From Anthoceros angustus (taxonomy: Eukaryota > Plantae > Anthocerotophyta), in contig VJWM01000209.1 in NCBI GenBank assembly GCA_010909165.1, forward strand, positions 124,001 through 188,000: a DNA stretch of 64,000 nt, in the 5' to 3' direction. This document shows positions 313-54,439 of this stretch, piece by piece. How positions within the stretch are numbered: the first letter of the stretch is position 1; each line of letters starts with the position of its first letter. Made by a program: the position numbers and the translations under genes. The notes beneath the pieces were generated by a model. It was not told the origin of the DNA and ran no database searches. It saw nothing but the letters and a program-made list of their open reading frames with translations.

Positions 313-620
313 CGTAAAGTGGCCTCTGCCCGGGCCTCGGCCTTATTGGTTTTCGGGGGTTGAAGGTAGATTCTAGAGAATTGATCTTTTGGTCATTTTT
401 ACTCAATATAGTAAATTTCATTACAATCGAGTAAAAACCATGCCATATGGGGTAAAAAGAATCCACCTCCAATGTTACAAACAGAGCAGTAGGGTAAAAA
501 AATGACCACCAAGTGAACATCAGGTACTCTAGTGGAAGCTCTTTCTAGAAATCCCACCAAAATCGCTAATCTGGCAAAAACATTTTCTGTTAAGTAATAT
601 TCATGCGGATCCAGGATTCA
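313..620 (+). repeat. Conserved 'head' terminus of A1
   Basis: Blocks GGGCCTCGG..TTTTCGGG, AGAGAATT, CAAGTGAA, TTCTAGAAATCCCACCAAAATCGCTAA and ATTCATGCGGATCC recur in the other heads. Confidence 0.85.
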
Positions 621-1284
621 TGCACTTACAACAAAGCTTTCCAAACAACCTCCCAGTAGTCCGTTACGTCTTCCAACGTAAGGCACTTCCTGAAACGGTA
701 AGACCGAGAATCAAACTATGCACAAACACGAAAGCAAGACCGAGAATCAAACTATGCACAACGGATAACAACACGAACAATGCATTTGTAACACAAAAGC
801 AAGGTCAAAAATTTAAAAGCGTTAAGCGCACTGGCGTCTCCCAATGCATCACGTCACCACATACGGCGCTTCACGAGCGAACAAGGCGGCGTTAGACTAC
901 AAAAAGTAGGCATCGAGAGAACACCATGCACGGTGAAACAAAAGCGAGAGAAAGTCACGAGACAACACATAGTCACGAGACAACGAACATATCTTGAGCA
1001 CGAGGTAAACAAACCATGCGATCGCAAACTCGGGCGTCAATGGACTTCTTGCAACAAAACTAAGCCGAACTGAACACACTAACCGCGGCATAGAGCATGA
1101 AGCGAGCGACATATATAAAAAGCGGCAGCAAAGGACCGAGACAACCGCGACAAGCAAGCGTGGCGGAAGTCTGGCCTGAGAGGGGCCGCAAGCGCCAACA
1201 ACAATCGAGGCGAAAACAAGCGCGTCACAAAGCGGAGACCAGCCAAAAGACCACATCGGACAAAGTGCAAGCGGAAGCACGATC

Positions 1285-2035
1285 TTGGCCTTTACAAGAA
1301 CACCAGATATGTCGCAAGACACATGCGGGACACTACAAAACTAGGAGGACAAGAACACATGCAGCGCAATTACAAAATGAGAAGGAACCCAAAGCGCCGC
1401 ACAAAACAACACGGAAAAGACCGGCCTTCAAGCTCGGAACCTTGGCCTTGGCGAACCTATAACGTTCGAAATGAAAAGCGTTGAGCGAAATACAAAATGG
1501 CCTTTGGAAGGACCGAGATAGAAGCCAATACAAGCAAACGTGACAAGGAAATGCAGTGCCGCACACAAAGGCAACGCATCAACAACAATCAAAGGCGGTA
1601 GAAAACAAGCGCACAACACGAGAGCAGACAAAAGCGACATCAAACAAAGGTGCAAGCGTAGCGGATCTTAGCCTTTAACCTCCGAAACTTAGCCGTGGAA
1701 ACCAAGCAACCTTGGCCGGGAAGAGGCGGATGGCCTCTTGGATGAAAAGCGAATCGCCACGAACAACAACTACTAAACTAGACCGGACCTTGGCCTTGGA
1801 CATACCTATCCACCGCAATAAGCACGCAAACCAAGATGATCTTGGCCGGACATACCTATCCCTGCAATAAGGACACAAACCAAGATGACCTTGGCCTTCG
1901 GACGTGCAATATACGAAGAAAAACGAAGCAAACACAGGAAGACCTCGGGCTTCGGACGTTCAAAACTAAGACAAAGAACAAACCAAAAGACACAGGAACC
2001 TTGGCCCTCGGAGCGGGAAGTGGAAAAGACCTTGA
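1285..2035. repeat. Array of degenerate (A)CCTTGGCC(TT) motifs; second copy ~3205-3800
   Basis: About ten visible copies, e.g. near 1441, 1711, 1788, 1841, 1889 and 1999. The same array occurs in A2, B2 and inverted in B1. Confidence 0.75.
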
Positions 2036-4775
2036 AATGTGGAGAAAGCGCTTAAATAGCCTACCAAACCCTAGGGTTTCTCCCTCTGCGGCGCCGCCGT
2101 TCTCTCTCTACCAGGCCTCATTTCAATTTTCCGAACACGGATTTGCGGTGACCAAACCTAACTAAGTCCGCGATTGGTCAGCCGCCACCCTACCTTCCCA
2201 AACCTAGCCCGACTTTGCCAAACCTAAACTTGAACTACCAAACCGAAAACCAAACCTCCAACCGCCGGGGCGTAAGACGAACCTCCCGACGAATCGATTA
2301 CCACACCTTCCGAAAACATCGAGAACCCTAACATTCTGCTATATAAACCCGATGGCGGGGAGTTGCGGTCTTGTCGCACGTCCCTGCCCACCGCTGTCCC
2401 CCTGCCGTCAAGCATTTGGCTCCATCTGTGACGGGACCGCGACCGCGGTGAAGTCTCTTCTCGTTTACCGTCAGGCCCAGCAACTTGTTTTCAGCGGAGA
2501 GTCTGCAGCAAGGCGGTGGACGGCTGTCCGGAAAAGTGGATTCCTAAGGGCGGTGCAGCTTACTTGGAGACGGCTGCGATCTGAAGCTACAGCGCAACTG
2601 GACAACCTGTGAAGGTGACTGCTTGTCTATGTCCGTTCTTGCTCAAATTTACAGTTCTTGCACACCCTTCCTTATCCGTTTGCTCATGGCGCCGTATATT
2701 TCAGACTGTCTGCAGGAGTTTCAAGAACTCACCTTCTCTGCCAGGTATTTTACAACCCCTGACGAGGTGCAGCAGTCCTTAAACGTGCACACCCTCCTTT
2801 GTTCTTTCCTCATGTCCCGGTTTTCTTGCACGTTAGTGGAGTATCGCGAACTCGTCTGGAGAAGGCATGCAGTAACATACAACCCATGACCACTTGCAGA
2901 TATTCCGTTAAATACGGACGGTTAGGATTTTGGGCGATGCGATGGCGACAACGTCTTCTGAGACTTGAGCGATCGGTAACCAGCGATGTCACGATTCACG
3001 ATCGCCAGCGAGCTCTACGGTGCGATGGGTTACATCGTTTCATCGTGGAGCTCAAGAATTACAAGAACACCAGATATGTCGCAAGACACATGCGGGACAC
3101 TACAAAACTAGGAGGACAAGAACACATGCAGCGCAATTACAAAATGAGAAGGAACCCAAAGCGCCGCACAAAACAACACGGAAAAGACCGGCCTTCAAGC
3201 TCGGAACCTTGGCCTTGGCGAACAACCTTAACGTTCGAAATGCGTTGACGAAATACAAATGGCCTTTGGAAGGACCGAGATAGAAGCCAATACAAGCAAA
3301 CGTGACAAGGAAGTACAGCGCCGCACACAAAGGACAGCCGCAACATCAACAACAATCAAAGGCGGTAGAAAACAAGCGCACAACACGAGAGCAGACAAAA
3401 GCGACATCAAACAAAGGTGCAAACGTAAGCAAATCTTCGCCTTTAACCTCCAGAAACTTAGCCGTGGAAACCAAGCAACCTTGGCCTTCAGGAAGAGGCA
3501 GATGGCCTACTGGATGAAAAACGAATCGCCACGAACAACAACTACTAAACTAGACCGGACCTTGGCCTTGGACATACCTATCCACCGCAATAAGCACGCA
3601 AACCAAGATGATCTTGGCCGGACATACCTATCCACCGCAATAAGCACGAAACCAAGATGATCTTGGCCTTGACGTGCAATATACGAAGAAAAGCGAAGCA
3701 AACACGGAAGACCTCGGGCGGACGTTCAAAACTAAGACAAAGAACAAACCAAAGACACGGGAACCTTGGCCCTCGGAGCGGGAAGTGGAAAAGACCTTGA
3801 AATGTGGAGAAAGCGGTTAAATAGCCTACCAAACCCTAGGGTTTCTCCCTCTGCGGTGCCACCGTTCTCTCTCTACCAGGCCTCATTTCAATTTTCCGAA
3901 CCTGGATTTCCGAGCCGGTGACCAAACCTAACTAAGTCCGCGATTGGTCAGCCGCCGCCGCCCTACCTTCCCAAACCTAGCCCGACTTTGCCAAACCTAA
4001 ACTTGAACTACCAAAAACCAAACCTCCAAGCCGGGAAGAGGCGAACCTCCCGGCAGATCGAGAAAGTGCCACGCACACTTAGGTGAAACATCGAGAACCT
4101 AACATTACGCTATATAAACCCGATGGCGGGAGTTGCGGTCTTGTCGCCGTCCACACCGCCCCCTACGTCAAGCATTTGGCTCCATCTGTGTGGGACCGAG
4201 CAGTGAAGTCTCTTCTACTTCGGTGCCCAAACTTGTTTTCAGTGAGTCTGCGGCAAAGGTGGAATGGAAAAGTGGATTCTAAGGCGGTGCGGCTTACTTG
4301 GAGGCAGGCTGCGATTTGAAGCTCTGACAGTATCGGACAACCTATGAAGGTGGCTTGTCTATGTCCGTTCTAGCTCAAATTCTGATTCTTGCACCCTTCC
4401 TAATCCGTTTGCTCATGGCGTATATTTCATCTTGTCTGCAGGAGTTTCAAGAACTTCGCCTTCTCTGCCGGTATTTTACAACCCCAGCGAGGTGCAATTT
4501 AAACGTGCACACCTCCTTTGTTCTTTCCTCATGTCCCGGTTTTCTTGCATGCCGTTGGAAGGCGCTCGAACTTCTCTGGCGAGAAGGATGCAGTAACATA
4601 CAACCCATGACCACTTGCTTGATAGTTAAATACGGACGGTTAGGATTTTGGGCGATGCGATGGCGACAACGTCTTCTGAGACTTGAGCGATCGGTAAGCG
4701 GCGATGTCACGATTCCGATCCTGCCGGGCGGTTCTATTACGGTGCGATGGGTTACATCGTTTCATCGTGGAGCTC
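1294..4775 (+). repeat. ~1.77-kb tandem duplication inside A1 (1294-~3055 / 3061-~4775)
   Basis: Both units start acaagaacaccagatatgtcgcaagac and end catcgtggagctc; they differ by scattered indels. Confidence 0.9.
2050..2350. promoter_or_regulatory. Putative bidirectional promoter of A1 (duplicate at ~3815-4120)
   Basis: Minus-strand TATA-like CTATTTAA (~2052-2060), palindromic telo-box AAACCCTAGGGTTT (2066-2079), CT-rich tract, CCAAACCTA repeats, CCAAT box on the minus strand (gattgg) and plus-strand TATATAAA (2340-2347). Confidence 0.55.
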
Positions 4776-5600
4776 GGCAATTCATGATTCGGCAACATAA
4801 CTTGCCGGATGGCGGAATGATGGGGGTTCTTGTTCTAACCGACCTTCATCAAGTCCGTTATCGCTTCCATGGTTGTGGGTTTTACATTAGCGGACGCGGC
4901 CTGACAGCAACCCCTGAAATGCTCCACCCTCATCAGGCGTTGAAGTGGACCACATGCGAGAGGACTTCACTAACGTCTTGTGAACTGCCATACCTCCTTC
5001 CTTGGATTCACGGCGACACGACGGCCGCGAAGCCAAGGACACAAGTAGGGTTTATGCTTCGTCGCATGCAGACGGTTCATTATGACAATGTCGGGCATGG
5101 TGCGAAGCTCTTGAGATGATTGGTAGTAGTGGCGGTGATGAGAATGTCACCGCAATATGGACGCCCGCTCCACGCATTCTCTCTCGCCCACACCCTTGGT
5201 GTCTCGGAGGTGCAAACCGATATGTTGACTGCCAGCTTCAAAGGTTAGAACTTGCGCCTGGCATTGGTTTGCAGCAGTCTGAAAACTTGTTGGGGTGGTG
5301 TGTAGATGAACTCGTCAAGTCGTGGAAGAGTGTCCAACTGCCGTATCGAGTCTCGCGGCAGTAGTCGTTGATGAACACAATCGCCAACCGTGGGAGCATG
5401 CTTGCGTCGAGGCAAGGTGCATAGGACGAATGCTACATTGGCGTTACAAGACGAGAGGCATGACACAGGAAGTCCACCATCCGGGTACATGAAGTGCTCC
5501 AAAACGTCCGGTTTGTTTGCACACTTCAAACACCAAATTATTTGCAGAATCAAGAAAATGTGTGGTTTGTACTCCTAACATCCGACTGCTCGCTGCTTTT
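4355..5600 (+). CDS. Cargo gene of A1, unknown product (254-aa ORF 4355-5119 plus a frameshifted continuation)
   Basis: Longest ORF in A1, downstream of the TATATAAA at 4111. No family recognised; the N-terminus is only faintly F-box-like. Boundaries approximate. Confidence 0.35.
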
Positions 5601-6084
5601 AAAGCGGACGTGCAAGAACGGGCGTTGCATCTGACGTCAACAAACACGACTCCGATAAACGGCAAGGTGAGGCTAAACAGAAATTTAGTGTCAGATGTGT
5701 CTGCTCAAAGTCCAACAGTCTCAAGGTTTCATTTTGAAACGTCATGCAGTCGACACCCCGAATTTTCCGTTTTTACCAATGAAATGACATTTAACCCGGT
5801 TTCTTGATGCACAGTTTCTTACATTGTAATTGCCTGAAGAAATATTCGCGTTTGGACAAGATACTCGAAAAGATAAACTTTACGTGTACACTCCTTCAAC
5901 CTCGGTAGAATATACCTAGGAAATATGTCACAAGTTCGTAAAACTATAAAATGTTACGGTAAAGCGGTGGAAAAGCATTTCGAACACTTTTATATGCGAA
6001 AGGTAAAATTGATAGTTGTTTACTTGAAAGAGAGAAAAGGAATTTAAGCCATTTTGCATAGGGCAACATGACTCTTAAAAGTGC

Positions 6085-6250
6085 GCCTGAGACCTCGGCT
6101 ATCGCCTCGATGCCGCCGAGTGGGCGCGTCTCGGCCCCAGACTCGGCGCTCCCTTACGCCCGAGAGCGGCGTCGAGGCGCCTGACCTAAACGGTCTCGGC
6201 TACTTGGCCTCGGCGGATTCTGGTATGACGCCTCAGCGTCCGTTCCCCAT
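6085..6250 (+). repeat. Conserved GC-rich 'tail' terminus of A1
   Basis: GACCTC..CGATGCCG..CGCTCCCTTACGCC..AACGGTCTCG..GACGCC..CCC is shared with the A2 tail and, more loosely, the B2 tail. Confidence 0.75.
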
Positions 6251-6480
6251 CGTGGCCAACTCGTGAGCACACGCAATCTTATGCCTTGAACCGGGGAGGA
6301 GATGGTGTGATTACGGATTTGAAGGGAATGAGCTTGGAGCTCAATGTTGAGGAACGCGAGCAAGCGATGGGCTTTGCCAAGAAGGACACTCGGACCATGG
6401 GCATCACACATGCAAGGTGCGGGATGCTCGGACGGGCATTTGACATGCGGTCACGAGGTGGGTGGTAGCCTGCTTGGCGT
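6251..6480 (+). pseudogene. DNMT3/DRM-like methyltransferase C-terminal part (motifs IX-X)
   Basis: WPT(L)VST.QSYALNRGGDGVITDLKGMSLELNVEEREQAMGFAKKDTRTMGITHARCGMLGRAFDM resembles DNMT3 EMERVFGFP..YT......R..LLGRSW and DRM EME..LGFPKNHTR.....R..SLGNSF. Confidence 0.78.
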
Positions 6481-6599
6481 TCCAACTTGCGAGCGAAGGA
6501 AGCGAAAGCCTTCCTCCAACTCTGCAGGATAAAGAGGTTCCTAAGGCGGAGGAAGATGAGCTGCGGGAGATTGACATGGCCTGGATGAGCATCCACCAA

Positions 6600-9260
6600 G
6601 AGTGTGAAAGAGGTTCATGTATGGCACATTGCGTAAGATGTGAGCCGGAAGATAAGCGAAAATCATCAACATGCTTGAGAAAAACAAGGGTGCTTTTGCA
6701 TTCAGTTGGAAGGAGCTGGGTAGATATGAGAAGATCAAGTTCAAGGTAGTGACGACTCATGAAGAGCCCGTCTTCAGAAGGAGGCACCGCCTCAGTTCAG
6801 CAGAATGGGAGATTGTTGACAAACGCTGTCAAGAGTTGTTCGAAGCGGGGTTGATAAGAAAATCAAGCTCTCAATATGCTGCTGCGACTGTCCTACCGCT
6901 CAAGAAGGATGAGAACGGTGAATGGAAGGACAGGAGGATGTGTGGCGACTCGACCTCTAAGCGAGGTGACTCCTATGGAGCACCCCATGCCTACTCAGAG
7001 ATTTTCGATGCCATAGGTAAGGCAAAGTTCTTTACACTTGGACTTCCGCTCGGGCTTCAACCAAATTGTGATTGAAGAGCGGGACAAGTGCAAGACACTT
7101 TGGAAGGACCAGCTTTGGGAGTGGGAGACAATGCCGTTTGGGCTGAAAATGCTTCATATATTTCCAAAGAATTGCGGATCTCTAGCTGCCATTTGTGCGT
7201 TGCTACATAGATGATATCCTGGTCTTGATGAGACAATCAAGAACATATGGAGCATCTAGAGATATTGCTCTGAGGCTCAAGCTCGGGTTTGAAAGCTCAT
7301 CCTAAGAAATGCAAGTTTGCTTTCCAGATCAGTATCTGGGGCATGAGATAGTACCGGAGGCATCATGCCTCGGTGGCTAAGGTGCGGCCGTGATGCAAAT
7401 GCCTAGACCAAAGGATGTAGCTCTTAGAGCCTTCACAGGTTTGGTGAACTATTACAGGAGGTTTATGAAGGATCGGTTCCACGTGTAAACCTCTGTATGA
7501 GCTGAAGAAAGACATTGTGGAAATGGGACCAAGACCGAGTTGGCTTGGCAAGATCTTGGGACGTTGGCGGAAGCCTATCTTGGCGGGCAATTTTGATCAC
7601 CCTTTCACTCTGGCACAGCACCTGGATTGGGCGGTGTTGTCACAACATGGTGCGGATGGTGTTGAGCGAGTGATAGCTTATGCAAGCCGATCTAACAACT
7701 CACGTGAACTACTCCTCATATGAGGGAGAGTGTCTTCTGGTATGGGCGATTCGCATTTCGTGGTCTATCTGTATGGAAGGCGTTTTCAGCGGTCACAGAT
7801 CACCAGCCACTTCATTGGTGATGACCAACATGAAGTTGAGTGGTAAGCTAGGTGGCGCTGCTATCTCGAGATATGGAGATCGTGCAGGCGGGCAAGGTAC
7901 ATCACAATGCGGATGGGCTAGCAATCCTGGAAAGTGACAAGGATGTCACAGAGCTCGGCAGATGAGGGGCACGTGGTGGTGCACCCAGCTTCATGGCACT
8001 CATGGCCGGGATAGATGATCATGAAGAAGGACATGTCTTGGCGAGTCCGGGGATGTTTGGAGACATCCTCAAGCCATCTGATTCTTGAAGGAAGGCCGCT
8101 GCACAGAATGGAGCGAGCTTGGCTAAACTCAGAAGGCGCGTGGCCAGATACTCATGGGAAGATGGTGAGTTACTGTCAGAAGGAGAACTCGTGAGGAAAG
8201 TACCAGGTCCTGAGGAAAGAGTGGGCATAGTGACCAAGGTGCACGAAACCCTTGGCCACTTTGGTGTGAAGAGGACACACCACATGCTGAAAAGTACGTA
8301 TTTCTGGTCAGGGATGTATGCAGATGTCGAGAAGGTGGTGGCTAAGTGTGCTGCATGTGATGCGATCAAAGCCGTTAACACCGGGATGTGGTGTTGCACT
8401 CCCTACCGAGGGGCTATTCTTTAGATGGTCGGTTGACCTTATGCGAGCTTCCTCTCACAAAGCAAGGTAACCGACATTGCATGGTCATGATTGAGCATTT
8501 CTCTAAGTGGGTTGAAGTGGCGTTCTTACCAGAGAACTCGCATTACACCAGAGCTTTTGCGGTGTGTGCTCACCGATTTGGGAGCTGGAGGTGCTCACGG
8601 ACGAGTGTGAGTTTCGGTGAATTCGGACCTTGCTGGGCAGAGTCTCATTGATCACGGGGAGGACATCGAGGATCATCCACAGCCGATGGCTGCGGAAAAG
8701 GCTAGTGCAAGACCTTCAAGGATGCACTAAGGAAATCTTGCATTCTTGTGGAGCCCAAGTGTTGGGATGAATTGCTCCCTTACATCGTGTTGGGGTGCAG
8801 GTCGGTGTGCGCTCTTGGAAGTTTCAGTCCATACTTTTTGTTATTCGGACGCAACGCAGTTGTTGCCAAATGTGGTGAAGGACACTTACTCCATCCTTTG
8901 TGGAGCAAAGATGCAAATGTGTGCTTGGCACGAGTTCAAGCAGGCAGTATTTCAAAGAATTCTTCCCATGGCTATGGACAATTTGGTGGCCCAGATCGGG
9001 ACCAGTGAGGTATGCTTATACGCTGGGGCTCGTGGAAGCCCAAAGCCCGCAAGTTTGCATCCGAGATTACGTGTACTTGGCCAGGGCTGCAAGCACGTTA
9101 GATGTTACAGGAGGCTTATCGAGAGTTGTCGAGTTGGTGAGCAAGGTGTGGTTGAACTTGAAGGAAGAGATGGCGAAGGTGCAAGGAACACATGAAGCAT
9201 TTGGCTCCATGCCATTTGCGATCTGGATACACGAACATGCCTCGACACGGACGCCACCAG
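6600..9260 (+). mobile_element. pol: Ty3/gypsy pol (RT - RNase H - integrase), frameshifted
   Basis: RT: GLIRKSSSQYAAATVLPLKK..RRMCGD, MPFGLK (~7131), YIDD (~7204). RNase H: VIAYASRS, YSSYEGECL. Integrase: HHCC finger (HETLGHFGVKRT..YFWSGMYADVEKVVAKCAAC, 8119-8400) and core (MIEHFSKWVE, WDELLPYIVLG). RT-RH-INT order indicates Gypsy. Confidence 0.93.
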
Positions 9261-9264
9261 CATT

Positions 9265-9392
9265 GCCACTGAGGTGTGGACTGTGGCCCGAAGAATTCAT
9301 GTTGCTATGTGATGTATGCGTGGTTACCATCTGTTTTGCCTCAAACCCGGCCGGTGTTCGGAAGGAGAATGGCTATGTGAGCATGTGTGCTA
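9265..9392 (+). other. PHD finger at the integrase C-terminus
   Basis: Across frameshifts: CG....EFMLLCDVC..GYHLFCLKP.....EGEWLCEHVC, matching the C4HC3 PHD pattern. Confidence 0.75.
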
Positions 9393-9799
9393 AGTGTGAA
9401 CGTGGCTCTTCGAAGGATGCGAGGTTGTCTTAAATTCACACACGTTGGAAGGCTGATGAGTTGTGATGCAGTGAAGAAGGACACAAGATGCTTGGGGCCA
9501 AATTCACAAACGGATCTTGCACATGCTAAGACGAGTTGTTGCGAGAAGCCGATTGCTGTGCAAGGAATTGTGAAAAGAGGAATTACGGTGTACGGAGGCA
9601 AGCAAGGGTCTAATTCCTACCGGAAACGAGACGAAATTGGGCACACATAGGCTGCGAGGAGCATCTCATTTTGGAAGAGGAACCTTTGCATGCAGTGATC
9701 GGGCGGTTGAGAATTCCTCACAGTGTTTCTAAAGGTGGTTTCATTTGTTTGGAGCTGGATAGGGAGCGCCATGGTCGCCCGTTTCACGTGCATAGGAGA

Positions 9800-16400: not shown

Positions 16401-17260
16401 TTTGGAGTTTCCGATTGTGTTCTTCTTGGCGATTGTGGATCCTTCGACTAGTGTAAGGTGCCATCGTCCCTCATTTCAACATTGATACGAGGGAAGTTGA
16501 TGCGTGGGCCTCCGTTGGAGGGCATTGTGTGAGTGAGTGAATCATCCGGGTTAACCAGACGTATGTGGTGTGGTAGCACTGATATATTGCACTGTGGACC
16601 AAATGGAAATGTAAGTGGCTTTGAGCAAGCTTGCATCTCCGAGAACGGAATTGAGAATGACAAATTGAAACAGAAATGGAGTTTCAAAAGGCAAAAGGAT
16701 TTGGAGGCACTTATAGAGAGACAGAGGAAAGCTTGAATTACGAGTCTCTAAGCAAAGAGAGAAAGCCCTTGAGATTCAGAGGCGAGAAATGGAGAGGAGA
16801 CAAGAGCATATTAAGCATCAAGAGAATCAAGCAGCAGAAAGAGCAAGAGGTTCGAGATTACAGTGGGAAAGACAACAGAGTAAGGATGTGCCTCGAGATA
16901 TTTCAATCGCTATCTCGCGAAAATCCGATCGTAAGCTTTATGCTTTTATTAATCGCTTTACTAGATTGAAAATTAATGGTTGTGTTGTTTTAGGTTGTGA
17001 CCTTGCGTGAAGATGGTCAATTTCGCCCAAGTCCTCGCCTTCATCAATTGGCTGCCAATTATGATAATGCGCATAAGTACCAATCAAGCCAAGTGGTCGT
17101 GAAAATTACATTTTCAATCAGATAATTGTACAAGAATTTCCCAAAATAAGGTGAGTATCAATGTTTTTATTTTTAGTGTTTACTAGTAGCATAATTACGG
17201 TTTGGGTGCTAATTTTGGTTTTGTTTGTAGGTTTCTTGTTGAAGCAGAGTTCACTCTAAC
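13407..17260 (+). CDS. Intron-containing Crypton/DUF3504-like tyrosine recombinase with C-terminal coiled-coil extension (frameshifted as assembled)
   Basis: Start MAPKRKP. Motifs: EDIPYKDLNLI; QFGVRGGEELHN (Arg codon 14663-14665); YEER.SKNYK; exon 15574-15768 WYAK..SKGMLSRFMKTMAEAAGLVGYYTNKSCRVTMITRL...VTGHKTDAGFS, spliced to R-Y-D-R (Tyr 15844-15846). GT-AG introns. The 3' end is approximate. Confidence 0.85.
15015..16000 (+). repeat. ~490-bp tandem duplication of the YR catalytic exons
   Basis: ttcagcttggtatgcaaaact...tatttagtcaccaagatc occurs twice; the first copy is more degraded. Confidence 0.9.
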
Positions 17261-17339
17261 GTATTTACTCTTCATTAGTTGAATTATTATGCATTCGATA
17301 TACAGAAACTCGCAAAGAAAAGGGTTCTTTGTTGGTTTT

Positions 17340-21800: not shown

Positions 21801-21819
21801 GATGGGGCGTAAGCAGCTG

Positions 21820-24700: not shown

Positions 24701-25403
24701 CTATCGATGAAGATTGCAACAAATGCTGAAATGATCGGCTTAAATGACACCAAGGAAGTGTGAAAGTAAAAGAACTAGGGATAATTATCTTTCTATCCAA
24801 AGTAATCTCAAGCAGTAAAAGATAGTTATAAGTACATCATTATATGCAGTATCATGCACTGCTATCGCAGTTCAGCCCAACCGCTGCCTCGTAGCTTACC
24901 GCCGCTTCCCTTATGTTTCTGCAGTCAAGACGTTCAATGTCTCAGCCTAATGGCCTGACTGCATCACGGCCCAACCGCTACCATCCGCCTCGCCGACTAA
25001 AGTAATTGAACAAACGCAAGCATCATTAGACAGAGTGCGATTACTTAATCCGCTATCCATGAAGAGTCAGAGCCGCATGCGATGCTAGTCAAACCGCTAT
25101 GGTCAAGATGAATCGATTTTCTGCGCGAACACCGAAAATGACTGGAAATGACACTCATGAAGTGAAAGCCAAAGAATTAGGATATGGCTCGATCCAAAGA
25201 AAGAGAAAAGATAGTTATAATGTGTGCTTACATGCGGCCTCTAAAATTGTCACGGACCTCTGCGCCTCCCTGCGATGCCGGCCAGCCCTCGGCCCGACCC
25301 GCCGCTCCCCTTACGCCAGAGCGGACTCGCGTCACGCACGGCCTAGAACGGTCTCGCCTAATGGTCTTCGGCCGTTCACGGGACGCCCTGCGTCTCCCTA
25401 ATA

Positions 25404-29270: not shown

Positions 29271-29329
29271 ATTTTCCTGCTCGATGACCTCGCTGGGCGG
29301 ATTCCCGCCCCCGCCAACCACTCTCTCAC

Positions 29330-32022: not shown

Positions 32023-32649
32023 CAGTCCACGAAGTCGCGCTCTGCCCTGGGGCCTCGACGCCGATTTTTTTCGGGGCCAAAAGGGTAAAACGAAGAGAGA
32101 GAATTTTTCAATTGGTAAAATTTTTTGAATAATAAGGTGGAAATTGTAACAATAGAGTAGAAAGCATAGATCGATGGATGGAAACATTTTACCATCCAAG
32201 TCAAAACTAGAATAGGAGGGTAAAGAATGGATCAACCAAGTGAATATAGAGTAAAAAGACCCGATGAATGGAAACATTTTACCATCCAAATCAAAACTAG
32301 AACAAGGGTAAAGAATGATCACCAAGTGAATAGCAAGTGCCCGAAATACCATGGTAGATTGTAATCATGTGAGGCCTAGTAATTCCAACACAATCGCTAA
32401 CTGGCAAGAAACATCTTCATAATTACTCATTCATGGATCCGGGATATACAAAAACCAACAAAGAAATATCATCTTTGCAAAGTTTCGTATATCCGTAATT
32501 GCATGAATTCAAAATAACAGAAAAAGAGAGAAAATACCAGAATAGTTGATCCTCCTTATTCGAAATTACAAATCTACATATACAAAGTAAATTAGGCTTG
32601 TAACCAATTAGATGATTCGGAATAGAAAAGAAAAGTTCATTAGAAAAGA

Positions 32650-35600
32650 TTCCCACCTTATTTTGGAAAATTGAGTATACAATTGTAGAGATTGAAGACA
32701 TAGTTTCCAAGACCACTTGGTTTAACCGGGGCAACTTGTCCAACATTATCATAGTTTGCCGTGGTTGATGAACTGGGGCTTTGGAGAAATTCTTCATCTT
32801 CACGAAAGTTGAGAACCTAATCAAACATTACCGTCTTAGTCTACTAAAGTAAAATTAGCGATCAAAATCAAGGGAACAATTAAATCAACTATACTTTATA
32901 TGGTTTTCCATGGATGGAAGTGGGCGCTGGAGGACGTAACATTGTCAATAGTTTGCTTCACGCTTTCCCAATCGCAATCTTCGCATTTCGTGTCTTCTGC
33001 TGCTGTTTGAGTTTTTCCTGCTTGAAATAAATACTTGCCTCCTTTCGACATTTTTCTCCTTTGGATCTCCAAAGCTTTCTCTGCTTGAAACTCGGTTGTC
33101 TGACCTTGCGCCTCTTGTTCAATCAATGATTCTAAACTGCTTGCCGTGAAATTCCCTTTCTCGATTCTCCCTCGCTATTCTCCCTTTCTGCAATCTCAAG
33201 AAGACGCTCAAACCTCGCTTGAACCACCCTTCTCAACCCCATGCCGCTCTACCATATCCAAAGCTATAGGGGTGTCTCCACAATCCTTCCTGCACTTCCA
33301 AGTCTCACCACAATGACTTGGCACATGTGCCTCAATCGAGGAGGCATCACCTCCACCACACTCGTGGCACCATCAATGTTGAAATGAGGAACCAAATGCT
33401 CACAAACTAGTGGTGGGGCTAATACCGCCAAAACATAGAATCGACAAACACAATAAGAGAATGAAGGATGAAACTTAAACCACCTTTACACTTAACCTTT
33501 TCAACATGTCGATGTTGAATACACCGAAGTTGGTCCGGCTTGTCAATCAAGATCTTTAACACTACTACGGCACTTGACAGCTTCCAAAGCTTCACAATGC
33601 TGGAGCGCAAACAACAACAAACATTGTATGAAATATTGGGTGCAAACCAGAAGGAGAACCAAAATACAAGAAGATACTACCGTCAGTCGACAAAAGGGCC
33701 CCGCTTTCATGGTGGATAGCAAGGGTGGTCAGCTTGGCAAACACGCAACAAAAAGCAACAAAAAGTCAAATACCAAAGAAAAGAAGAAAAGAAACAAACC
33801 TTCGACACCAAAGCGACTCAAAATGCTTGTCAACCGAGGAGGCATCACCTCCACCACACTTAGGCACCATCAATGTTGAAGCGAGGACCAAATGCTCGTC
33901 AAACTAGTGGCGACACGGCATCTTTAGTGGTGGGGCTAATACTGCCGCAAACATAGAATCGACAAACACAATAAGAGAATGAAGGATAAAACTTAAACCA
34001 CCTTTACACTTAACCTTTTCAACATGTCGATGTTGAATACACCCGAGTTGGTCTGTTGTCAATCGAAGATCTTTAACACTACTTTCGCACTTGACAGCTT
34101 AAAAGCTTCACAATGCTGGACGCAAACAACAACAAACATTGCATGAAATATTGGGTGCAAACCAAGCAAGGAGGACAATAAATACAGCAAGATACTAACC
34201 GTCCGACAAAAGGGGCCCTGCTTTCATGGTGGATAGGGGTGGTAACAAATTGGCAACACCGGCAACAAAAAGCAACAAAAAGAATCAAATACCAATCGGA
34301 AAAGATTAAAAGAAACAAACCTTGAAACCAAAACGACTCATGGAATGCTTACGCTCACGAACTTGTAGGCAACATTGAGCACAAGCCTATGCACAACAAA
34401 TTCTTAACATCAGCATCCTTTACGTAAGTAGAATCATAATCTTCTCCGCGAAAATCACTCCCTTCATGGTAGAAAATACTTACATCTTCAGTGTTGGAAA
34501 AACTATATCCGGAGTCACATTGACAACAATGGCGGAAGCACACCGCAAGTCATCCCGCATCCGATGAGTTCTTCATTGAGCAACTCATTGTATGATCTTC
34601 TTTCACGGGAACTAGAACCGGCCGCATACTGCTTTGCTTGCCCGAGCCATACCAAAGTCCACATCTGTGAGAACACATCATGTCAATAGAAGGCATAAAC
34701 AAGTTCTGACGGCATCAACAAATAGATCCTACCTTGAAAATCCAGCATCGCTTTGTGGCTGACGCCTCGCCAAGATCTCGAGGGCACGAGCCATGGTCGG
34801 CCAGAATCAATCACGTTACGGCCTCTTGTTCGTGTAATACCCATCAAGACCAGCCGCCACGCCATTGTCTTCATATATTTTGAGAGCATTCCTTTGGATA
34901 CCCGGAGTTTTGCATACCAAGCCTACTCACGGAGAAAATTAAAGTTAGCACGTCCAATGGAACACAAACCTAGAACCCTTATCAAAAGATACTTACATTC
35001 GATCTTGGATTATCGATGGGAGAATTGAAAAGAAACCCTTGGATAGATATATTCTTGTCATTTGCAGTCCACTTTGGACAATGGTCAATGACGGCTTTAA
35101 ATGTTTGAATAACATCCACCTCATAGTTTTCACTTTTGGCGGAAGTGCTCACTCGGTAGTTGCGCATATCAACTTTGTAATTCTTGAATGGTTCCTCGTC
35201 TGCGAGGCAACACAAGGAGGGTATTACAACACAAACAAGGTATCATACAGAGTATTACCACACAACAAAGCATCAATCAAAACATGGACAAACGTACGTA
35301 CAAAACGCCTCCAATCAAGAGAATGAGAAGTCCACGACAGGTTGTGCCTCCCCGCCACGTACTCAAACGATTCATGCAAAATATGCACACCTATTCGAAA
35401 ACACTGAATCGTTAGAAGCAAACAACAAGAACACGTATTGCAAAATGCACACAAGAAGCTAGGAATCGAACAAACCTCGGGCGCCAAAAGAACATTGATG
35501 GTCACTGTGAATTGCCTCTCATCATCATCGATATCGCCACCACCTTTCTGACGATACTATACCAAGGTCTTTCTTGATTTTCATGGAAGCCAAGTGCGGC

Positions 35601-36620
35601 GACAACCATTGAACACGCGAAACATATTGATCACGGCACATCGACCAAGACGGCTTTGCTCCAACACACTTCCTTATCAAAATGCGATTGAACCCTCGAA
35701 GAAGGACATCAACTGCACCAATATCGAAATCGACATAAAATGAAAAGAAACACAACGGAATAACAGGGATGAAGACTTACGTTGAGAGAGAATCTTGAGT
35801 TGTCTTTTAAGTTCGAACTTGGTGGAAAAAGCAGTATCAATATAAGGTTCAAGTCCTTGTGAGGAATGTCCTCTATTGCACTATCAACCCCTCACACCAC
35901 TCACTTTCATGAAAGACTTAAGACCGCACCAATTATTTTGGCGTTTGGACTTGTCCTCACCACCACTCATTGCATCATTCACGGCTCCCTCAGGGAATCG
36001 AGGGGTCAAACCCTTAGGTCCCTAAAATGGGCCTCATCTTCAATTTCCATGCCCATAGCAAAATCATCCTCGTGGATCGGACCTCATTCTCTCAAACATA
36101 TCAATACACTCTGTCGGGGATAACTTCAGTCGGGGAGCTTCGGAATGGAAAACTCACGGTGAAAGGAATTCAGAGACTTATCTTGCTGCAGGGAGCCCTG
36201 ACCATTTCGAGATCAGGCATGCTTTCGCGGCCAAGGACCATGGAATCGTGTAATCGGATGGACATTCTCACCAACAAACTTAACCTCTCTCGAAAGGACA
36301 ATAGTTAGTAATCTCGACAAGGACCCTCCACCAAGGGCACAGGTGGGTGTCAACCCTTCTTCTTCCGAGCAAATTCAAGAAGACGGGCATCCTCCTTGGA
36401 TGAAAAGTGCCTTGGCGGTTTGGGAATGGACTTTTCGGCACCAAATATGTCCTCACTATGCACAAGGACATCACAACTTTACCATCATCCTGCGGAGGGT
36501 GGGTTGCGGTGAGCGATGGGTGTTTTAACACGTTGTCGAGTGTACGGCTTGGACATGACTTGGACAAAGGTGCTGCTTCTTGCCCGGTCCAGGCCGAGAG
36601 GGTTTTCTTTTAGGAGCCAT
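32650..36620 (-). CDS. Crypton/DUF3504-like tyrosine recombinase, diverged paralogue of 13407-17260
   Basis: MAPKRKP; THPPQDDGKV; IEDIPHKDL; VRGG; FKNYKVDMRNY; WYAKLP.SKGMLSKYMKTMA; GYYTNK(S)GR; HKSDAGFSR. Introns around the catalytic exon match B1. The catalytic Tyr codon reads TGT here (mutation or base error). Confidence 0.82.
33335..34340 (+). repeat. ~500-bp tandem duplication within the B2 YR gene 3' region
   Basis: gaggaggcatcacctccaccacac...gaaacaaacctt occurs twice. Confidence 0.88.
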
Positions 36621-37934
36621 CGCAACAGGAGAAGTCATCGAACAACGTTGAGATGTACAAACAACATAACAGATAACAAGCGAAAAGAAAGAACTCACAT
36701 GCGCCTTGAACCGTCGGATGAGAACTGGAAGGTCTAAAAGATTGATTATCGACGGTCTAGACAAGAGAGGATATGGCGGTGCCCCAAAACACAACTTGGG
36801 GCTAGACATTGTTAGAGTTGTTATTCCCTTCCACTTTAATTAAGGATGACACATAGAACTGCCTAAAAATACACCACATATGGGAAAAATAAAGTGAAAA
36901 CCCTTTTTCAAGTACAACAAGAGTTAGAACAAACAACCATAGATGTACAACATATACACCACACAAGTAAAACAATCAATCGCTCATTGGACAACACAGA
37001 CTCATCCATGCACACAACAACACATATTTCTAGATTAGAATGGAAAACATCCAAAGATGTTGGGAGGCAAACCCTCCGAGACGTTGCACACTTCAATACA
37101 CGCACATAAACACCGGTCTATGAGATTAAGCTCCAAGACATGCACACAATACAATGCCCAATCCAGATTCACTTTTCAATAGACACAAGTACGTATGAGC
37201 TGACAATAAAATCTAAACGGGTCTTCAACGACAAAGCTCGCAAAGAAAGGGTTATCGACACACCGCAAAAGTCAACTTAAAACGACACAACAAAACCGCA
37301 CAAACGAGAACAAAAAATCATGCGATAAGAACAAAATAACGCTACACAACGACAATCAACACTACACGAGACAAACAAAGTCATTACGAGCGAAAAGGAT
37401 CACATGACAGAAGACAAGAAATAAAGGATGGATGATAATGCAACGAAACCAAACGACAACAATACATAGGGGACACTCAACAAGCAAAATAAAGGATTGT
37501 AAAGAAGACAATAAAGATCACAAATGCATCGATGAAAAAATGAAAGCAACACTCAAGCTCTAAGTCTAAGAAAGTTACCGGTCGATAAAAGGAACCAGAG
37601 GGAGCATCGTATAAAACGGCAACCACCATTGACTGCTTCAACAACAAACACGATGTAAACAACAACAAAACAAAGAAAGAGGAACGGAGGCGATCGGCAA
37701 AGACAACGGATAGCAATTGAGCATCGAGACATCTTCTAGCAAAATAGACAAGCACGTACATTACAAAGAACAAGATCATCGATCGGGTAGACACACCGCG
37801 ATAAGGAAGACCAAAAGCGAATACAGCCAGAACATTGATGAAGACAAAACCGACAAAACAACAAGAGCGAAACAAATACAAGGAGGCGAGACACAACGAA
37901 GCGCAAATGGACGCGATTTCAAAAGGGAGCGATA

Positions 37935-38760
37935 GACCTTAACCTTTAAGCGACGAAACCTTGGCCTCGTCAAAACACTTGACCTTCGTGTCAAAACACG
38001 GCTGGACTTAGCAACAACCTCGGGCCTTAGAAGCAAAGACCTTGACCTTCGGCAAACCCGAAAACAACCTTAAACAGAAAGCAAAAAACGAACTTTGCCT
38101 TCAAGCAAACTTACAGAGACCTTGGCCTTCGAACGAACGGTAAAACCTTAGCCTTTGGAGAAGGCAAAGAACCTGGGCTTAAAATTGAACAAAGGCTTAG
38201 CTAGAACACATTGGCCTTGAAAGACACACAAAAGCTTAGCCTTCGAGAAAAAACAAACAACCTGGCCCGCAAACTAGAACTAGACGCCTTAAGCTGAGCA
38301 AAGCCTGATGCACCTTGGCCTACGAAGATAAAGATGCGTAAGGCCTTCCTTCAAACACAGACAATACCTTGGCTGCAAACTAATCCCGGACAGAGCTAAG
38401 TCATGGAGGAGAGACCGGACCACAGGCCTGGAAGAAGAAAAAGACCTTGGCCTTTGGAGAAGCCGCATATAGGCCACCAAACCCTAACCATTCTCCGCTG
38501 GGCGCCGTTTCTCTCTACCAAACCCGATTTGAATTAACCAACCTAACATTCCGAGAATCCAAACCTCACGAGGTTCGCTTCGCCGCCGCCGCCCTTTCAA
38601 CCAAACCTAGGTTCCGATTCCAAACCTAGCCTAACCGCACAAACCTAATCTCCGAGCCCCAAAAGTATGACGTAACCACACCGCCACGCACACCGTCGAA
38701 CCATCTAGAACCCAAGTTTTCGATTTAACAAAGATACACTTAGGGTTTCGCTCACTTAAC
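37935..38760. promoter_or_regulatory. CCTTGGCC array plus putative divergent promoter of B2
   Basis: More than 12 degenerate CCTTRGCCT units, then AAACCCTAA (38479-38487), gccgtttctctctacca, CAAACCTA repeats and a reverse telo-box TTAGGGTTT near 38740. Confidence 0.6.
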
Positions 38761-39729
38761 ACGCCGCCAGCGCTCTTCACCGTCGATGTCGACGACCTTG
38801 GCTGCCTTCACCGGCATCCGTTCACGACCGCCTGCTGAGTGTGTCTGCTCCTGTCCTCGGGAAGCTCACGCCATCGGCTCCACTTCCCTTCATCTAGGTA
38901 CCGCCCACCACGCCCGTGGGCTCTCTTTCAAGAGTCTGGTTCCGCCTCTTGCATGTCATCTAATTGCACTCCGATATTGGTTCTCGCTGAACTACCTCGA
39001 GTTCATTTTGCACCCACACCGGTGGCATCCACGCTTAGCTCCCCGCTTGACAATGGGGCCGAGGTTCGACGTGCTCGACGCTCCTCCGTTTAGCCCTTTT
39101 CAAAGATGTCCCGTGGCTGCTGAGCCGTCCACCGACCCTCGCTTCGCCTCATAGATCTCCTCCCGCCGCTTTTGGTTCCGATCCGACCGCCAGTTCTGTG
39201 TGCCTTGCACCAAGGGTTAGCTGGAAATGTTCTCTTGTGGGTTATGGTGCTCTTCCTTTGTTCCCACCGCCCCGATCGCAGCCGGCTTGTGTCTTTTTAC
39301 GCCACGCTACCGCCAGGACTGTGTGGGTTACTTGCTGTTGCTCTTGGTCTTGTTTTTCTCTCTCATTGTTTTACTACATGCCTTGTCTTCTACCCACATG
39401 GCTTGTCCTCGCCAGTTCCACCTTCCTTCGCGTGTCTCGACCATGCATCCGACTGCATTTAGTTTTCACTGGTTGCTTGGTATTTCGAGGTGTAAGCCGA
39501 GAGGCTCTTTGCCTGCATTTGCGTTGTCACACGCACTTACTTCTCTTTTTCGTGTGTTGGCGCGTGACGATTACTCAAGTTCTCTCGACACCTTAAAAGG
39601 ACCAGTTTGTAAATCTTGGTCACCAACACATCCCACTAGTTGGGCATCATTGGTAAATGGCATGGAGTCTTTGATGGGCTAGTGTTTTCAATGCTACATT
39701 TGTCATGCACTTAATAAACTCACGACCTC

Positions 39730-40540
39730 CTCATCTCCAGAATTCGCTGCAGCCAAAGGTCACGCAAGAAGGCGCCATCCTAGTGTAAGTACGTCCCGTC
39801 ACAATAATTCTATGGTCGTCATTTGAACGACGTGTCTCTGGAGGGTTGGGCACGTACTGGGAAACTAATGCATGATTGGGTTGACAAGCAAGAGGTAAGG
39901 GTTCGTCGAGCAAAAGAGTCTCGTTTTGAAGTCTTTTCGTAACATAACTATCCTCGCGTAAAACATGAATCTTGTGTGCGTAGTTTGAGAACATATTCGC
40001 GCTTTTGCTTCCAACAAGTTATCGGATTGGTGATGACGCAGCTTTTAACAAAATTGATGCGTGATCTTGCGACAATTGGTTTCGCGTGAAGCGCTCGAAC
40101 GATTTATAATGGCAATACCTGCTCAACCCGTTCGCTTTGCGTGCGCATAATGCGTCTTGTGATGATTTGATAGAGTCGTCCACTAGTGTGTTCGATGGCT
40201 TTTCATTTGAATCGGGATGGAATCCAAAAGCAATAACGATTTTCAAATCCAAGAAGGTACTTGATTGCCACATGTATTACACAAACAGAGAACGAATGTA
40301 TGACAGCTTGACACAAAGATGAAAACATACCACGTTTCATCGATGAATTTTCGTGTTTCTTCAGGATCTTGTTCAAGCCCCCACACCTCCCGCCGCCAAG
40401 ACATACAAGTAAGAAAAGCACCAAACAAAGCTAACAAAGAACCTGAAAACGCCACAAACAAAACAAAGAAACTAGTAAAATGACACACAATCAAACAAAC
40501 AGCTTGGACACAAAGAATGAATCGCACCTAAATTACTTCC
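39730..40540 (-). CDS. Spliced cargo gene fragment; 40285-40540 is shared with A2 19940-20220
   Basis: Exon MSWRREVWGLEQDPEETRKFIDETW and flanking intron-like sequence are closely similar to A2. Confidence 0.4.
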
Positions 40541-40546
40541 CACCCA

Positions 40547-41950
40547 TGGGGATCCAGATATGACGCTAACGCAGAGTTTGAACCACCACCACCGGAGAGA
40601 AAGATCGAGAAAAGGTATTCAGGAAAAATGATTGTTGTTAGTCCATATGTTCTCGTTGGTCGAGTCTAACAAAACCCGTGGGTTTCGGGCCTCTGAGCAC
40701 ACAATGTTCGTGATGGACAAACAAGACCTTAAGCATCTTTGCGAGATGCCCGCCAGCTTGAATAAGATAAAGAAGGTAAGCACTTTTCCCTATTTCATAA
40801 ACTTGATCTAAGTATGCTCAATCCAAAATCTAACCCTAAATTTATCTCTCGCAGATATAAAAAGAACCTCAACAATACCAATTGAACCGAAACGTACACA
40901 CTTGTGGAAAGGTTTAATGGACACCGATTTCAATGCAAACAATGTTGGAGGGATATCAAAGTTCCATCCAGCAAGACTGGAGGTAATCAAATTACATTCA
41001 TACCTTCTTTGCTTCTTCACATTTACCTTCTTATAACTTGGCATTGCACGCGGAAAACAAGTCATAAAGGACAAAGTCGATGAGATTGACAACAACATTG
41101 ACAATGCCATCTCCAATCGTGTACAAAATGTATTTTGTATTTAATTTGTTTTAATATGATTTTGGTTTAAGAAAGTAATGATTTTGGTTTTGATCGGGCA
41201 AAAGAGAAAATAGATGACTTCAAGGAGAATGGACCAACTTACGGGCCGTCACAAGAGTTCACGAGTTTGGAAAGTGGATGAGCAATTTTCAATATCCACC
41301 ACTTTTGAAGACTTTAAATCTAAGTATCCGCAATTTGGGAGCATAGTCTAAAAGAGCAAGCACAGCCCATCTTGAATGAAGATGGGTCCAACCCCAACAT
41401 TCGAGCAAAGACAGAGAGAGATCCAAGCAAGTAAGCGCAAAACTCCCTTTCTCTTCTTATTTTTTACATATAACTCTATGTAATGTAATTCGATGCATTG
41501 AATGCGAGATAGGGGCAGCAATTGAAAATAAGGAGTTGAAAACGATGACTTGTTGTCTCTCATGGAAGAACCGAGACAACGAAAAATATTCAAAAGGTAC
41601 ATCGCTTGAAAGATAATATCTCGCTTGCATTCCAAGATGAATTCTAATGAATTTATGTTTCTTCGTAACATACGATCACATTTCGCAGTGTCGAAATCTT
41701 CACAAAGACGTGTTTAACGCTTGTCGAAAAGGTATATGCAAAGAAAGATCTTCTCCGAATTGAAATGGAGGTAAATGACTAATTACTTTTACTTTTTGTT
41801 TGTAGTTATCGAAGAATCAAAACGAGTTGTTTTCACTCTTTGAGGTGAGTACTAAAGTTGACAAAACAAATATGTTTTATATATGAATTCTGACAATGGT
41901 TTAAATTGCAGAAATATTCTCGCTTGGATGAAATATTCGAAATGATAATA
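40547..41950 (+). CDS. Multi-exon cargo gene with a C2H2 (U1/matrin- or BED-like) zinc finger
   Basis: RFNGHRFQCKQCWRDIKVPSSKTG (~40910-40985), then NLALHAENKS(H)KDKV (~41035-41080). Several GT-AG introns. Confidence 0.5.
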
Positions 41951-42209
41951 CATTTATCTGGACCATACAATCAGCAGCTCAAAAGTACTATTCAAGAGAA
42001 GGCACAACCGAACCATTTTACACTCCATCTACCCAATAGAAGATGAGTAGAATTTACCAAAATCATTTGAATTACCTTACGATGTTGAGAAGGTAATGCT
42101 TTTATGCGGTAAAAGGATTCAAAAAACGAAAAAGATGTAATAAGCAGAAATGACTCAAGAGAGAGAAATGACAGGCCGGGTGGTTTAGGCACCAAGTTCA
42201 TAGACCCAC

Positions 42210-42380
42210 AGACCTCGCCGCCGCCCCTGGCCCCGCAATGAAGCTGGGCGCTGCCCGGCCCCTGCACCTCGGCCGCTTCCCGATGCTAGAATCCGGACGT
42301 TGACAAGACGGCTCTTCCAGAACGTCTCATTACCTACCGACCGTTTTGCCGTGACGCCTCCGCCATCTCGCTCCCTAATA
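42210..42380 (+). repeat. Tail terminus of B2
   Basis: GACCTC..CCGCTTCCCGATGC..AACGTCTC..GACGCC..CTCCCTAATA; the last 10 nt are identical to the A2 end. Confidence 0.7.
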
Positions 42381-54360: not shown

Positions 54361-54439
54361 GTGCCCCAAAAGGCATTTAAAGGAATTGGAAGGTAAGCTA
54401 GCTCCATGGAGTGCTATCGAAACCCTATAGCTTCCCGGA

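Follow-up and report, generated by a model that had tools for sequence, protein, structure and literature searches.

Self-comparison of a 64,000-nt window of contig VJWM01000209.1 (positions 124,001 to 188,000, forward strand) revealed one family of repeated elements in four decayed copies, named A1, B1, A2, and B2 in the order in which they lie. All copy counts given here apply to this window, that is, to the whole stretch of DNA analyzed. Judged from the sequence, we regard the four copies, with moderate confidence, as the remains of an old family of Crypton-type tyrosine recombinase (YR) DNA transposons with non-autonomous derivatives. In the best reading, B1 and B2 would be formerly autonomous copies, and A1 and A2 would be the non-autonomous derivatives. 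The units measured 6-10 kb, and overall identity between the copies was 55-79%. A preliminary description of this DNA had proposed a repeated element plan, and the plan proved largely real: the units were bounded and consistently oriented and lacked both terminal inverted repeats (TIRs) and long terminal repeats (LTRs). Block order and orientation were the same in A1, A2, and B2, and the orientation was flipped in B1. The B-type layout consisted of a head, the YR gene, a pyrimidine-rich leader of ~1-2 kb, a cluster of CCTTGGCC motifs, a TATA-like/AAACCCTA block with CCAAACCTA repeats, a right arm, and a tail. A1 and A2 retained the head, the internal motif block, and the tail; they had no YR gene, and the rest of their interior was non-homologous, so that the slot of the first gene held other sequence in these two copies, as had been proposed. 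No reverse transcriptase (RT), Rep/helicase, or DDE gene, and no TIRs, LTRs, or end hairpins, were found in the four elements. The B1 and B2 units were wholly explained by the YR gene, the leader, and the motif blocks, with no RT, RNase H, or methyltransferase inside.

The head, ~300 bp long, was the clearest common feature. In a four-way alignment, pairwise identity was 55-75% over ~295 common columns, whereas the DNA beyond the outer head edge was only 29-44% identical among the copies. A degenerate head pattern matched exactly four sites in the window and none in shuffled sequences, and the GC fraction dropped at every outer head edge from 0.52-0.58 to 0.34-0.40; the four heads of the preliminary description were thereby confirmed. 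The A1 head (~300-636, +) began with an outer GC-rich edge of ~40 nt carrying GGCCTCTGC/GGCCTCGGC at 321-341, and its remainder was AT-rich with repeated sub-motifs of the GTAGAAAA type. The B1 head was an inverted copy (17327-17672, -), the A2 head (~19560-19846, +) had a diverged outer edge, and the B2 head (~32008-32463, +) contained an extra internal sub-repeat of ~90 bp (32172-32246 / 32262-32332). The GTAGAAAA-type sub-motif was iterated two to four times per head at a spacing of roughly 20-92 nt. The head began ~170-200 bp beyond the YR stop codon. A metagenome scan with a head-specific pattern gave no match. B1 and A2 lay head-to-head, inverted, with 1.9 kb of GC-rich DNA between them (17672-19560), an arrangement from which Cryptons of Chlamydomonas give rise to inversions.

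The first gene of B1 and B2 had been described as an intron-containing YR, and the alignments supported this. The segments 13156-17535 (+) of B1 and 36879-32243 (-) of B2 were collinear at 61-69% identity including introns, and tblastx together with three-frame reading revealed a series of short, conserved exons bounded by GT...AG and read toward the head in both elements. The introns were U-rich and aligned at 61-66%, and the YR coding span was about 3.7-4 kb. In B1, the YR pseudogene occupied 13405-17154 (+), with many introns and a C-terminal exon near 17080-17154. The Box I arginine region (GVRGGEEL) was located at 14615-14728 (+) by tblastn of the relatives described below, and the lysine hairpin FKNYK was found near 14830 (+). 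The B1 catalytic exon was present twice on the plus strand, at 15083-15275, with a frameshift near 15140, and at 15573-15734, doubled by an internal tandem duplication of 0.5 kb (15005-15509 / 15502-16005). In B2, the pseudogene extended over 32658-36620 (-), from an ATG at 36620 to a stop codon at 32658-32660; its catalytic exon carried frameshifts near 34820-34920, and another 0.5-kb internal tandem duplication was present (33332-33828 / 33830-34350). Both YR copies are pseudogenes, and there is no functional recombinase within the window.

When the residues of the R-K-H-R-H/W-Y set were examined, the Box I arginine, the lysine hairpin, a K-S-C-R sequence replacing H-x-x-R, and the second histidine were recognized, followed by a splice site. 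The first catalytic histidine is a lysine in the element YR, and the relatives keep K/R/H/Y invariant. Type IB topoisomerases have a lysine at the equivalent position, so this replacement need not abolish catalysis. The exons were searched singly and not as a joined spliced protein; Pfam gave no YR match for ten window exon pieces, which are too short for Pfam, and a metagenome scan for the YR also gave no match. Taken together, the collinear exons and the matches of the catalytic exon and Box I to the relatives indicate a genuine Crypton/DUF3504-style YR gene with lysine at the first-histidine position. Since the gene has introns, it points to a DNA element rather than a retroelement.

The relatives were found by querying the catalytic exon (54 aa, 15573-15734) against 1.84 billion representative proteins, where the genuine matches were P0002-P0006. 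P0006 carried the same unusual motif Y-T-N-K-S-x-R-V-T, followed by T-G-H-K ... R-Y; the other matches were several short proteins with YTNHS-x-R motifs, plus P0005, which carries DUF3504 (E=5e-15). The top-ranked match, P0001, was rejected as a spurious repeat protein matched in seven stretches. In a profile search of 5.8 billion clusters, the nearest proteins formed a nine-member family, none of whose members was named or came from NCBI/UniRef. The exon was 46-54% identical to the family P0006-P0011, sharing the motifs NKS-x-R-V-T and TGHK...Y, and tblastn of the relatives and their upstream open reading frames (ORFs) mapped the catalytic exon, the preceding 'DVI.TFK...GFLF.SPI' exon, and the Box I region. 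K-S-G-R, G-H, and R-Y were invariant in all six aligned family members. P0010 scored above the Pfam Phage_integrase cut-off (30.4 vs 27.1 bits), with three other members just under it. The Box I region of one relative showed a weak DUF3504 match, and P0005, the DUF3504 protein, could be aligned in order to both the N-terminal and the C-terminal domain of the family. A Pfam scan of P0007, P0009, P0010, P0011, and the N-terminal ORFs of L011/L012 gave no DUF3435 match; a weak one was seen only in P0002, a short fragment outside the family. Public protein collections contain hardly any members of this YR family, which is rarely recorded and apparently plant-associated.

Several further features of the relatives were observed. 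P0007 and P0011 came from one sequencing run, and the P0007 contig also bore a zf-RVT gene. This zf-RVT neighbor, the U-rich introns, and the AAACCCTA motif beside a TATA-like box hint indirectly at a green-plant host, which the preliminary description had supposed. The P0010 YR gene was found at the same locus with the same neighbors in 15 metagenome contigs from many samples (L001-L010 among contigs of the Joint Genome Institute, JGI), with ADH_N/ADH_zinc_N exons ~5 kb downstream; in that organism the YR occupies a single locus and may be either a domesticated gene or an element of low copy number. The family (P0006-P0011; L011, L012) also has a C-terminal extension with no Pfam counterpart, comprising an EEEMRFW motif, a predicted coiled coil, and a conserved extreme end (..APVFG.T.YNYQNFD..), the last of which was recognizable in the window at 32661-32730 (-) and 17080-17118 (+).

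The internal motif block was shared by elements with and without the YR gene. The CCTTGGCC motif had 20 matches in the window against 2.8 expected, clustered in all four elements and oriented with the element, which bears out the array noted earlier. Directly after this cluster, A1 (twice), A2, and B2 had in common a block of ~330 bp, in which a TATA-like box was followed by AAACCCTA, a CT-rich stretch, and two or three CCAAACCTA repeats. The TATA-like/AAACCCTA combination had four matches where none were expected, and CCAAACCTA had 13 against 0.29 expected, 11 of them within the blocks. In A1, a tandem duplication of 1.77 kb at 87% identity (1292-3060 / 3059-4782, +) doubled the motif array and the promoter-like block. 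The first A1 copy (1440-2328, +) held five CCTTGGCC motifs (1440-2006), the TATA-like box with AAACCCTA at 2055-2073, and three CCAAACCTA repeats (2152-2226); the second (3207-4114, +) held four CCTTGGCC motifs, the box with AAACCCTA at 3820-3838, and three CCAAACCTA repeats. The A2 block (21385-21829, +) comprised two CCTTGGCC motifs, the box with AAACCCTA at 21607-21625, and three CCAAACCTA repeats, and the B2 block (37959-38727, +) comprised four CCTTGGCC motifs (37959-38452), the box with AAACCCTA at 38468-38486, and two CCAAACCTA repeats. B1 had a cluster of three CCTTGGCC motifs (11143-11450, -), which ended where the element broke off. The block looks like a plant-style promoter in its sequence, and the promoter reported earlier was thus recovered in A1, A2, and B2 and was missing from B1. 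Its TATA-like box is near-palindromic, so the direction of the promoter is not readable from the sequence.

Between the YR start (in the A copies, the head) and the CCTTGGCC cluster, strand-asymmetric stretches were observed at 640-1400, 11450-13400, 19850-21380, and 36880-37850; they were purine/A-rich on the element plus strand, with an AT skew of up to 0.35. The long stop-free 'ORFs' rich in Cys, Phe, and Leu on the pyrimidine-rich strand of these stretches were rejected as compositional artefacts, not genes.

At the other end of the units, the GC-rich A1 tail (6091-6250, +) matched the GC-rich A2 tail (25255-25406, +) at 73% over 115 bp (z=14 against shuffles). A pre-tail in A1 (5816-5889, +) matched a 76-bp pre-tail in B2 (41888-41963, +) at 71% (E about 1e-5), and behind it B2 had a collinear putative tail (~42240-42392, +), weakly supported, that had short strings in common with the other tails in a three-way alignment. 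The arms of A1, A2, and B2 all finished with an AT-rich stretch and then a GC-rich tail. The common tail proposed earlier was therefore well founded for A1 and A2, marginal for B2, and not found in B1. The similarity of B1 to the other elements and its AT-rich composition both ended near 11140, which indicates that B1 is truncated after its CCTTGGCC cluster; of the two ends suggested for it, 11060 agreed with this limit and 9757 did not. Head and tail had been called unrelated, without TIRs or LTRs, and this was upheld: local alignments of heads with tails were no better than shuffles, and inverted repeats of at least 80 nt were absent from the whole window. Terminal hairpins were neither significant nor conserved, with fold z-scores of heads and tails from -1.6 to +0.3. 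The motif GRCCTCKGC occurred nine times against 1.7 expected, including the outer head edge of A1 and B1 and the tails of A1 and A2. Cryptons usually carry short direct repeats (4-6 bp) at both termini. At the A2 boundaries, a direct repeat matching at 15 of 16 nt was found (19561-19576 and 25391-25405; p=0.006, uncorrected, in 12 tests), which could be a recombination core, a target duplication, or chance. The last ~80 nt of the A2 tail were re-duplicated together with the flank at 25705-26110. The repeat 25793-26110 was considered as an unoccupied paralogue of the A2 target and rejected, because the full alignment showed that the last ~80 nt of the tail had been copied as part of a local tandem duplication.

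These boundaries bear on the possibility that the elements are shorter, reaching from the head no further than the TATA-like/CCAAACCTA block (~2 kb for the A type, ~6.7 kb for the B type), in which case the presumed cargo to the right would be flanking DNA and the A1/A2 tail an unrelated small repeat. Similarity among A1, A2, and B2 does halt just past the CCAAACCTA repeats, at 2328/4114, 21829, and 38727, and beyond this point the copies have unrelated sequence that is in part background-like in GC content; the B2 tail is not significant in pairwise comparison, and a headless partial tail lies at 25705-25805. However, the A1 and A2 tails have the same orientation and a similar distance from the head (5.9 and 5.8 kb), the A1 pre-tail is collinear with that of B2, all three arms close in the same way, and the headless partial tail belongs to the local tandem duplication that also copied the flank. 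We consider shorter elements unlikely.

Against the interpretation as a Crypton-type family stand several observations that should be weighed together. The B2 tail was marginal (z=3.3 against A1 and 1.0 against A2), and B1 had no tail. Similarity between head start and tail end was significant for A2 only, without correction, and the pooled score was not significant. At only 55-79% identity between the copies, no exact termini can be assigned. The window's two YR genes are dead, with their frameshifts and 0.5-kb internal duplications. An AlphaFold model of the family was unusable (predicted local distance difference test, pLDDT, 36.5), the coiled coil being the sole confidently modeled part, and a sequence search of the PDB matched only coiled coils of the C-terminal extension, with no YR match. 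Finally, there are only four copies, all inside 42 kb of one window dense in transposable elements, and local tandem duplication is rampant in this window and may contribute part of the copy number.

The last of these points leads to the alternative of local segmental duplication and inversion of a single YR locus, either a transposon relic or a host gene, whose conserved blocks would be a 3' untranslated region (UTR) and a promoter and whose coding part would have been lost from A1 and A2. The crowding of four copies within 42 kb would fit, as would the many local tandem duplications of 0.4-2 kb, found inside A1, B1, and B2 and beside A2; the head, at its short distance past the YR stop, could be a 3' UTR or terminator, and the single locus of P0010 in 15 metagenome contigs is host-gene-like. 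Independent duplications would not, however, give four heads with the same outer boundary and unrelated DNA beyond it, three of them sharing a tail end. Nor does the mosaic of conserved blocks and non-homologous DNA resemble neutral decay, as the introns of B1 and B2 can still be aligned and the interiors of A1 and A2 cannot be aligned at all. We judge this origin to be improbable.

The right-hand parts had been reported to differ in all four elements and to carry a second gene as cargo. The difference was confirmed: the segments between block and pre-tail in A1 (4115-5815), A2 (21830-25254), and B2 (38728-41887) had nothing in common at the DNA or translated level (tblastx), and as the A1/A2 ends are 67-79% identical and the B1/B2 introns remain alignable, the right-hand segments are truly non-homologous and not just diverged. 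The A1 and A2 segments had no protein evidence; that of A1 had no homology to the other elements, and that of A2 contained a 1.5-kb GC-rich stretch at 21900-23400 (57-62% GC). The B2 segment held a 300-bp piece (40244-40540) that matched the A2 interior (19899-20216) at 81% identity in the same orientation, the nearest of all A2-B2 matches and above the 55-67% of the A2 and B2 heads. The B2 arm is therefore composite, and the piece would imply a third A2-like copy or recombination between elements.

The second gene was not recovered. None of ten right-arm ORFs contained a Pfam family, and the longest ORF tested, of 254 aa in A1 (4355-5116), had no homologue among the 140-445-aa candidates of an index of 5.8 billion proteins, a size limit under which this null result does not cover shorter, longer, or intron-split kin. 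By our own estimate, the chance of such an ORF is about 0.02 for a 2-kb arm and about 0.2 for the whole window. The longer ORFs of the A2 arm lay mostly on the minus strand, within the 57-62% GC stretch where long chance ORFs are expected. From their sequence, the right-hand segments are most plausibly non-coding DNA that was replaced, rearranged, or nested, rather than cargo genes.

These results also bear on whether the elements are Starship-like or cassette-like cargo carriers, in which an internal promoter would drive different captured genes and one YR would move the modules. In A1, A2, and B2, each variable segment does lie between conserved blocks, with the promoter-like one to its left and the pre-tail/tail to its right; the TATA-like box, AAACCCTA, and CT-rich stretch are readable as a rightward promoter, though the box is near-palindromic; and the 254-aa ORF of A1 is longer than chance for its arm alone. 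However, no right-arm ORF has a domain, the 254-aa ORF lacks a homologue in the size range searched, the longer A2 ORFs are mostly on the wrong strand, the right arms have nothing in common, the B2 arm contains a fragment of the element family itself, and the plant-like YR family has no DUF3435 match in units of 6-10 kb in total. The Starship-like, cargo-carrying character claimed for the family was not borne out, and we regard it as very improbable. A related conception, of a eukaryotic integron-like platform that swaps cassettes, would have the YR both move the unit as a whole and exchange a segment enclosed by conserved sites; its YR gene would be transcribed away from the conserved internal promoter block, which would point into the variable segment, and the sites enclosing that segment would be the CCAAACCTA repeats and, at its other side, the pre-tail/tail. 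The bracketing and the non-homology of the segments are its basis, and it seems to us far-fetched. Least credible of all is a YR gene captured by a transposon of another class (Helitron, DDE, or retroelement), to which the ends would then belong: asymmetric ends with a GC-rich 3' region are superficially Helitron-like and a Ty3/gypsy pol fragment with Integrase_H2C2 lies between A1 and B1, but the B units contain no Rep/Hel, DDE, or RT ORF, TIRs and significant or conserved terminal hairpins are absent, and the gypsy fragment is outside the units and unrelated to them.

Under the preferred interpretation as a Crypton-type family, an intact YR encoded elsewhere in the genome would bind the conserved end and internal motifs and would excise the unit as a circle, with tail joined to head. 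The circle would then re-insert through site-specific recombination at a short core; a candidate for this core is the GRCCTCKGC-like motif, with its enrichment in tails and at head edges. That the units are mobile, that they form a circle, and what the motifs do are all inferred, the analogy being the Goodwin model confirmed for CryptonF-1_cRei. Of the autonomous/non-autonomous system proposed earlier, the part that stood is that the gene-less A1 and A2 share the head, the motif block, and less clearly the tail; the part that did not is that one YR mobilizes the modules, both YR genes in the window being dead.

Other features of the window were as follows. A 5'-truncated Ty3/gypsy-type pol fragment at 6300-9500 (+) adjoined the A1 tail, with no detectable LTRs; Integrase_H2C2 was recognized at 8119-8421 (E=7e-17), and an RT-like ORF at 6671-7075 was recognized by eye, with no Pfam match. 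A1 was considered as a clean insertion into this gypsy element and rejected, the 300 bp to its left having no gypsy-like reading frame. An ORF of 254 aa at 52368-53132 (-), with a Cys-rich motif and DG..P, presumably recalls CACTA/Tnp2-type transposases (no Pfam match; unconfirmed), and it sat within tandem units of ~1.9-2 kb at 47.5-54.4 kb. The region 44-63 kb consisted largely of tandemly duplicated units of 0.4-2 kb. Outside the elements, tandem duplications were mapped at 44260-45046, 47532-54360, 54433-57065, 57069-59814, 60025-62291, and 62467-62934; further ones were mapped at 1292-4782, 15005-16005, 24619-25220, 25322-26110, 26747-27993, and 33332-34350. In and outside the YR elements, the units were 0.2-2 kb long and 69-94% identical, and the region seems unusually prone to short-range tandem duplication. 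No tRNA or Rfam families were found in the window, and nothing in it pointed to a human contig. Two window ORFs looked up as exact sequences returned no record.

Cryptons are well documented in fungi, animals, stramenopiles, and Chlamydomonas. The literature searched yielded no account of a streptophyte YR DNA transposon, whether from land plants or from others, and one paper states that a related class of YR retroposons is not known to have complete elements in streptophytes (PMC3537659). The earlier statement that there is no described equivalent was nevertheless too strong: Chlamydomonas, a green alga, has known and active Cryptons, and motif-matched target insertion and Crypton-mediated inversions are documented there (PMC9977147). 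The family is not categorically new. An autonomous/non-autonomous arrangement in which copies have just their ends in common and lack terminal repeats is on record for animal Cryptons (PMC3212892). If the host is a streptophyte, a plant lineage of Crypton-like elements would be on record through the window and its related family of nine proteins. The copies in the window are dead, and the cargo idea, which was the main source of the original excitement, is without support; the YR family may include intact copies, active or domesticated, and Crypton-like elements can drive inversions and translocations, as in Chlamydomonas.

Among systems that also encode a YR, DIRS/Ngaro elements differ from the window units: these lack RT/RNase H/methyltransferase, have a gene with many introns, and show neither split direct repeats nor inverted terminal repeats with an internal complementary region. 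The Starships of fungi, giant cargo carriers whose 'captain' YR has DUF3435, share with the window elements a YR, asymmetric ends, and variable interiors, yet they measure tens to hundreds of kb, with several intact accessory genes, and not 6-10 kb; the window family has no DUF3435 match and no identifiable cargo gene, and its YR gene reads outward, toward the element end. The closest agreement is with Cryptons (Goodwin et al. 2003; Kojima & Jurka 2011, PMC3212892), in which the sole gene is likewise an intron-containing YR with an N-terminal DNA-binding-type domain followed by the catalytic domain, and which resemble the window elements in lacking TIRs and LTRs, in their asymmetric ends, and in a size of a few kb. 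The nearest proteins outside the YR's own family include the DUF3504 protein P0005, as in the DUF3504-related CryptonA lineage, a kinship given by sequence matches and not a clade placement. CryptonF-1_cRei of Chlamydomonas reinhardtii (PMC9977147), compared by description, is also a YR DNA transposon with a host in the green lineage; its insertion proceeds by recombination of a short motif at the terminus with a nearly identical target, and its inverted copies give rise to inversions. Its lineage differs in a GCR1_C-type C-terminal domain and in active, near-identical copies, whereas the copies here are dead.

Gene-less Cryptons that share only the ends with an autonomous element have been described, namely CryptonI-1N1_RPro and the medaka CryptonA-1N1/1N2_OL (PMC3212892). 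A1 and A2 resemble them in being gene-less and in sharing a few hundred bp with the YR-encoding elements, clearly at the head (B1 and B2) and marginally at the tail (B2). In the published cases, the ends are 98% identical and the elements abundant (PMC3212892), while here the ends are 55-79% identical, there are four copies, and a third, internal block is also conserved. Unlike known Cryptons, the family YR has a lysine for the first catalytic histidine (NKS-x-R), invariant in six aligned relatives, the relatives bear the long C-terminal extension with its EEEMRFW motif, coiled coil, and conserved end, and the window elements have a conserved internal block with two motif arrays around a TATA-like box. 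The family is thus distinct from described Cryptons in its lysine-for-histidine site, its C-terminal extension, its internal double motif array, and, probably, its host lineage.

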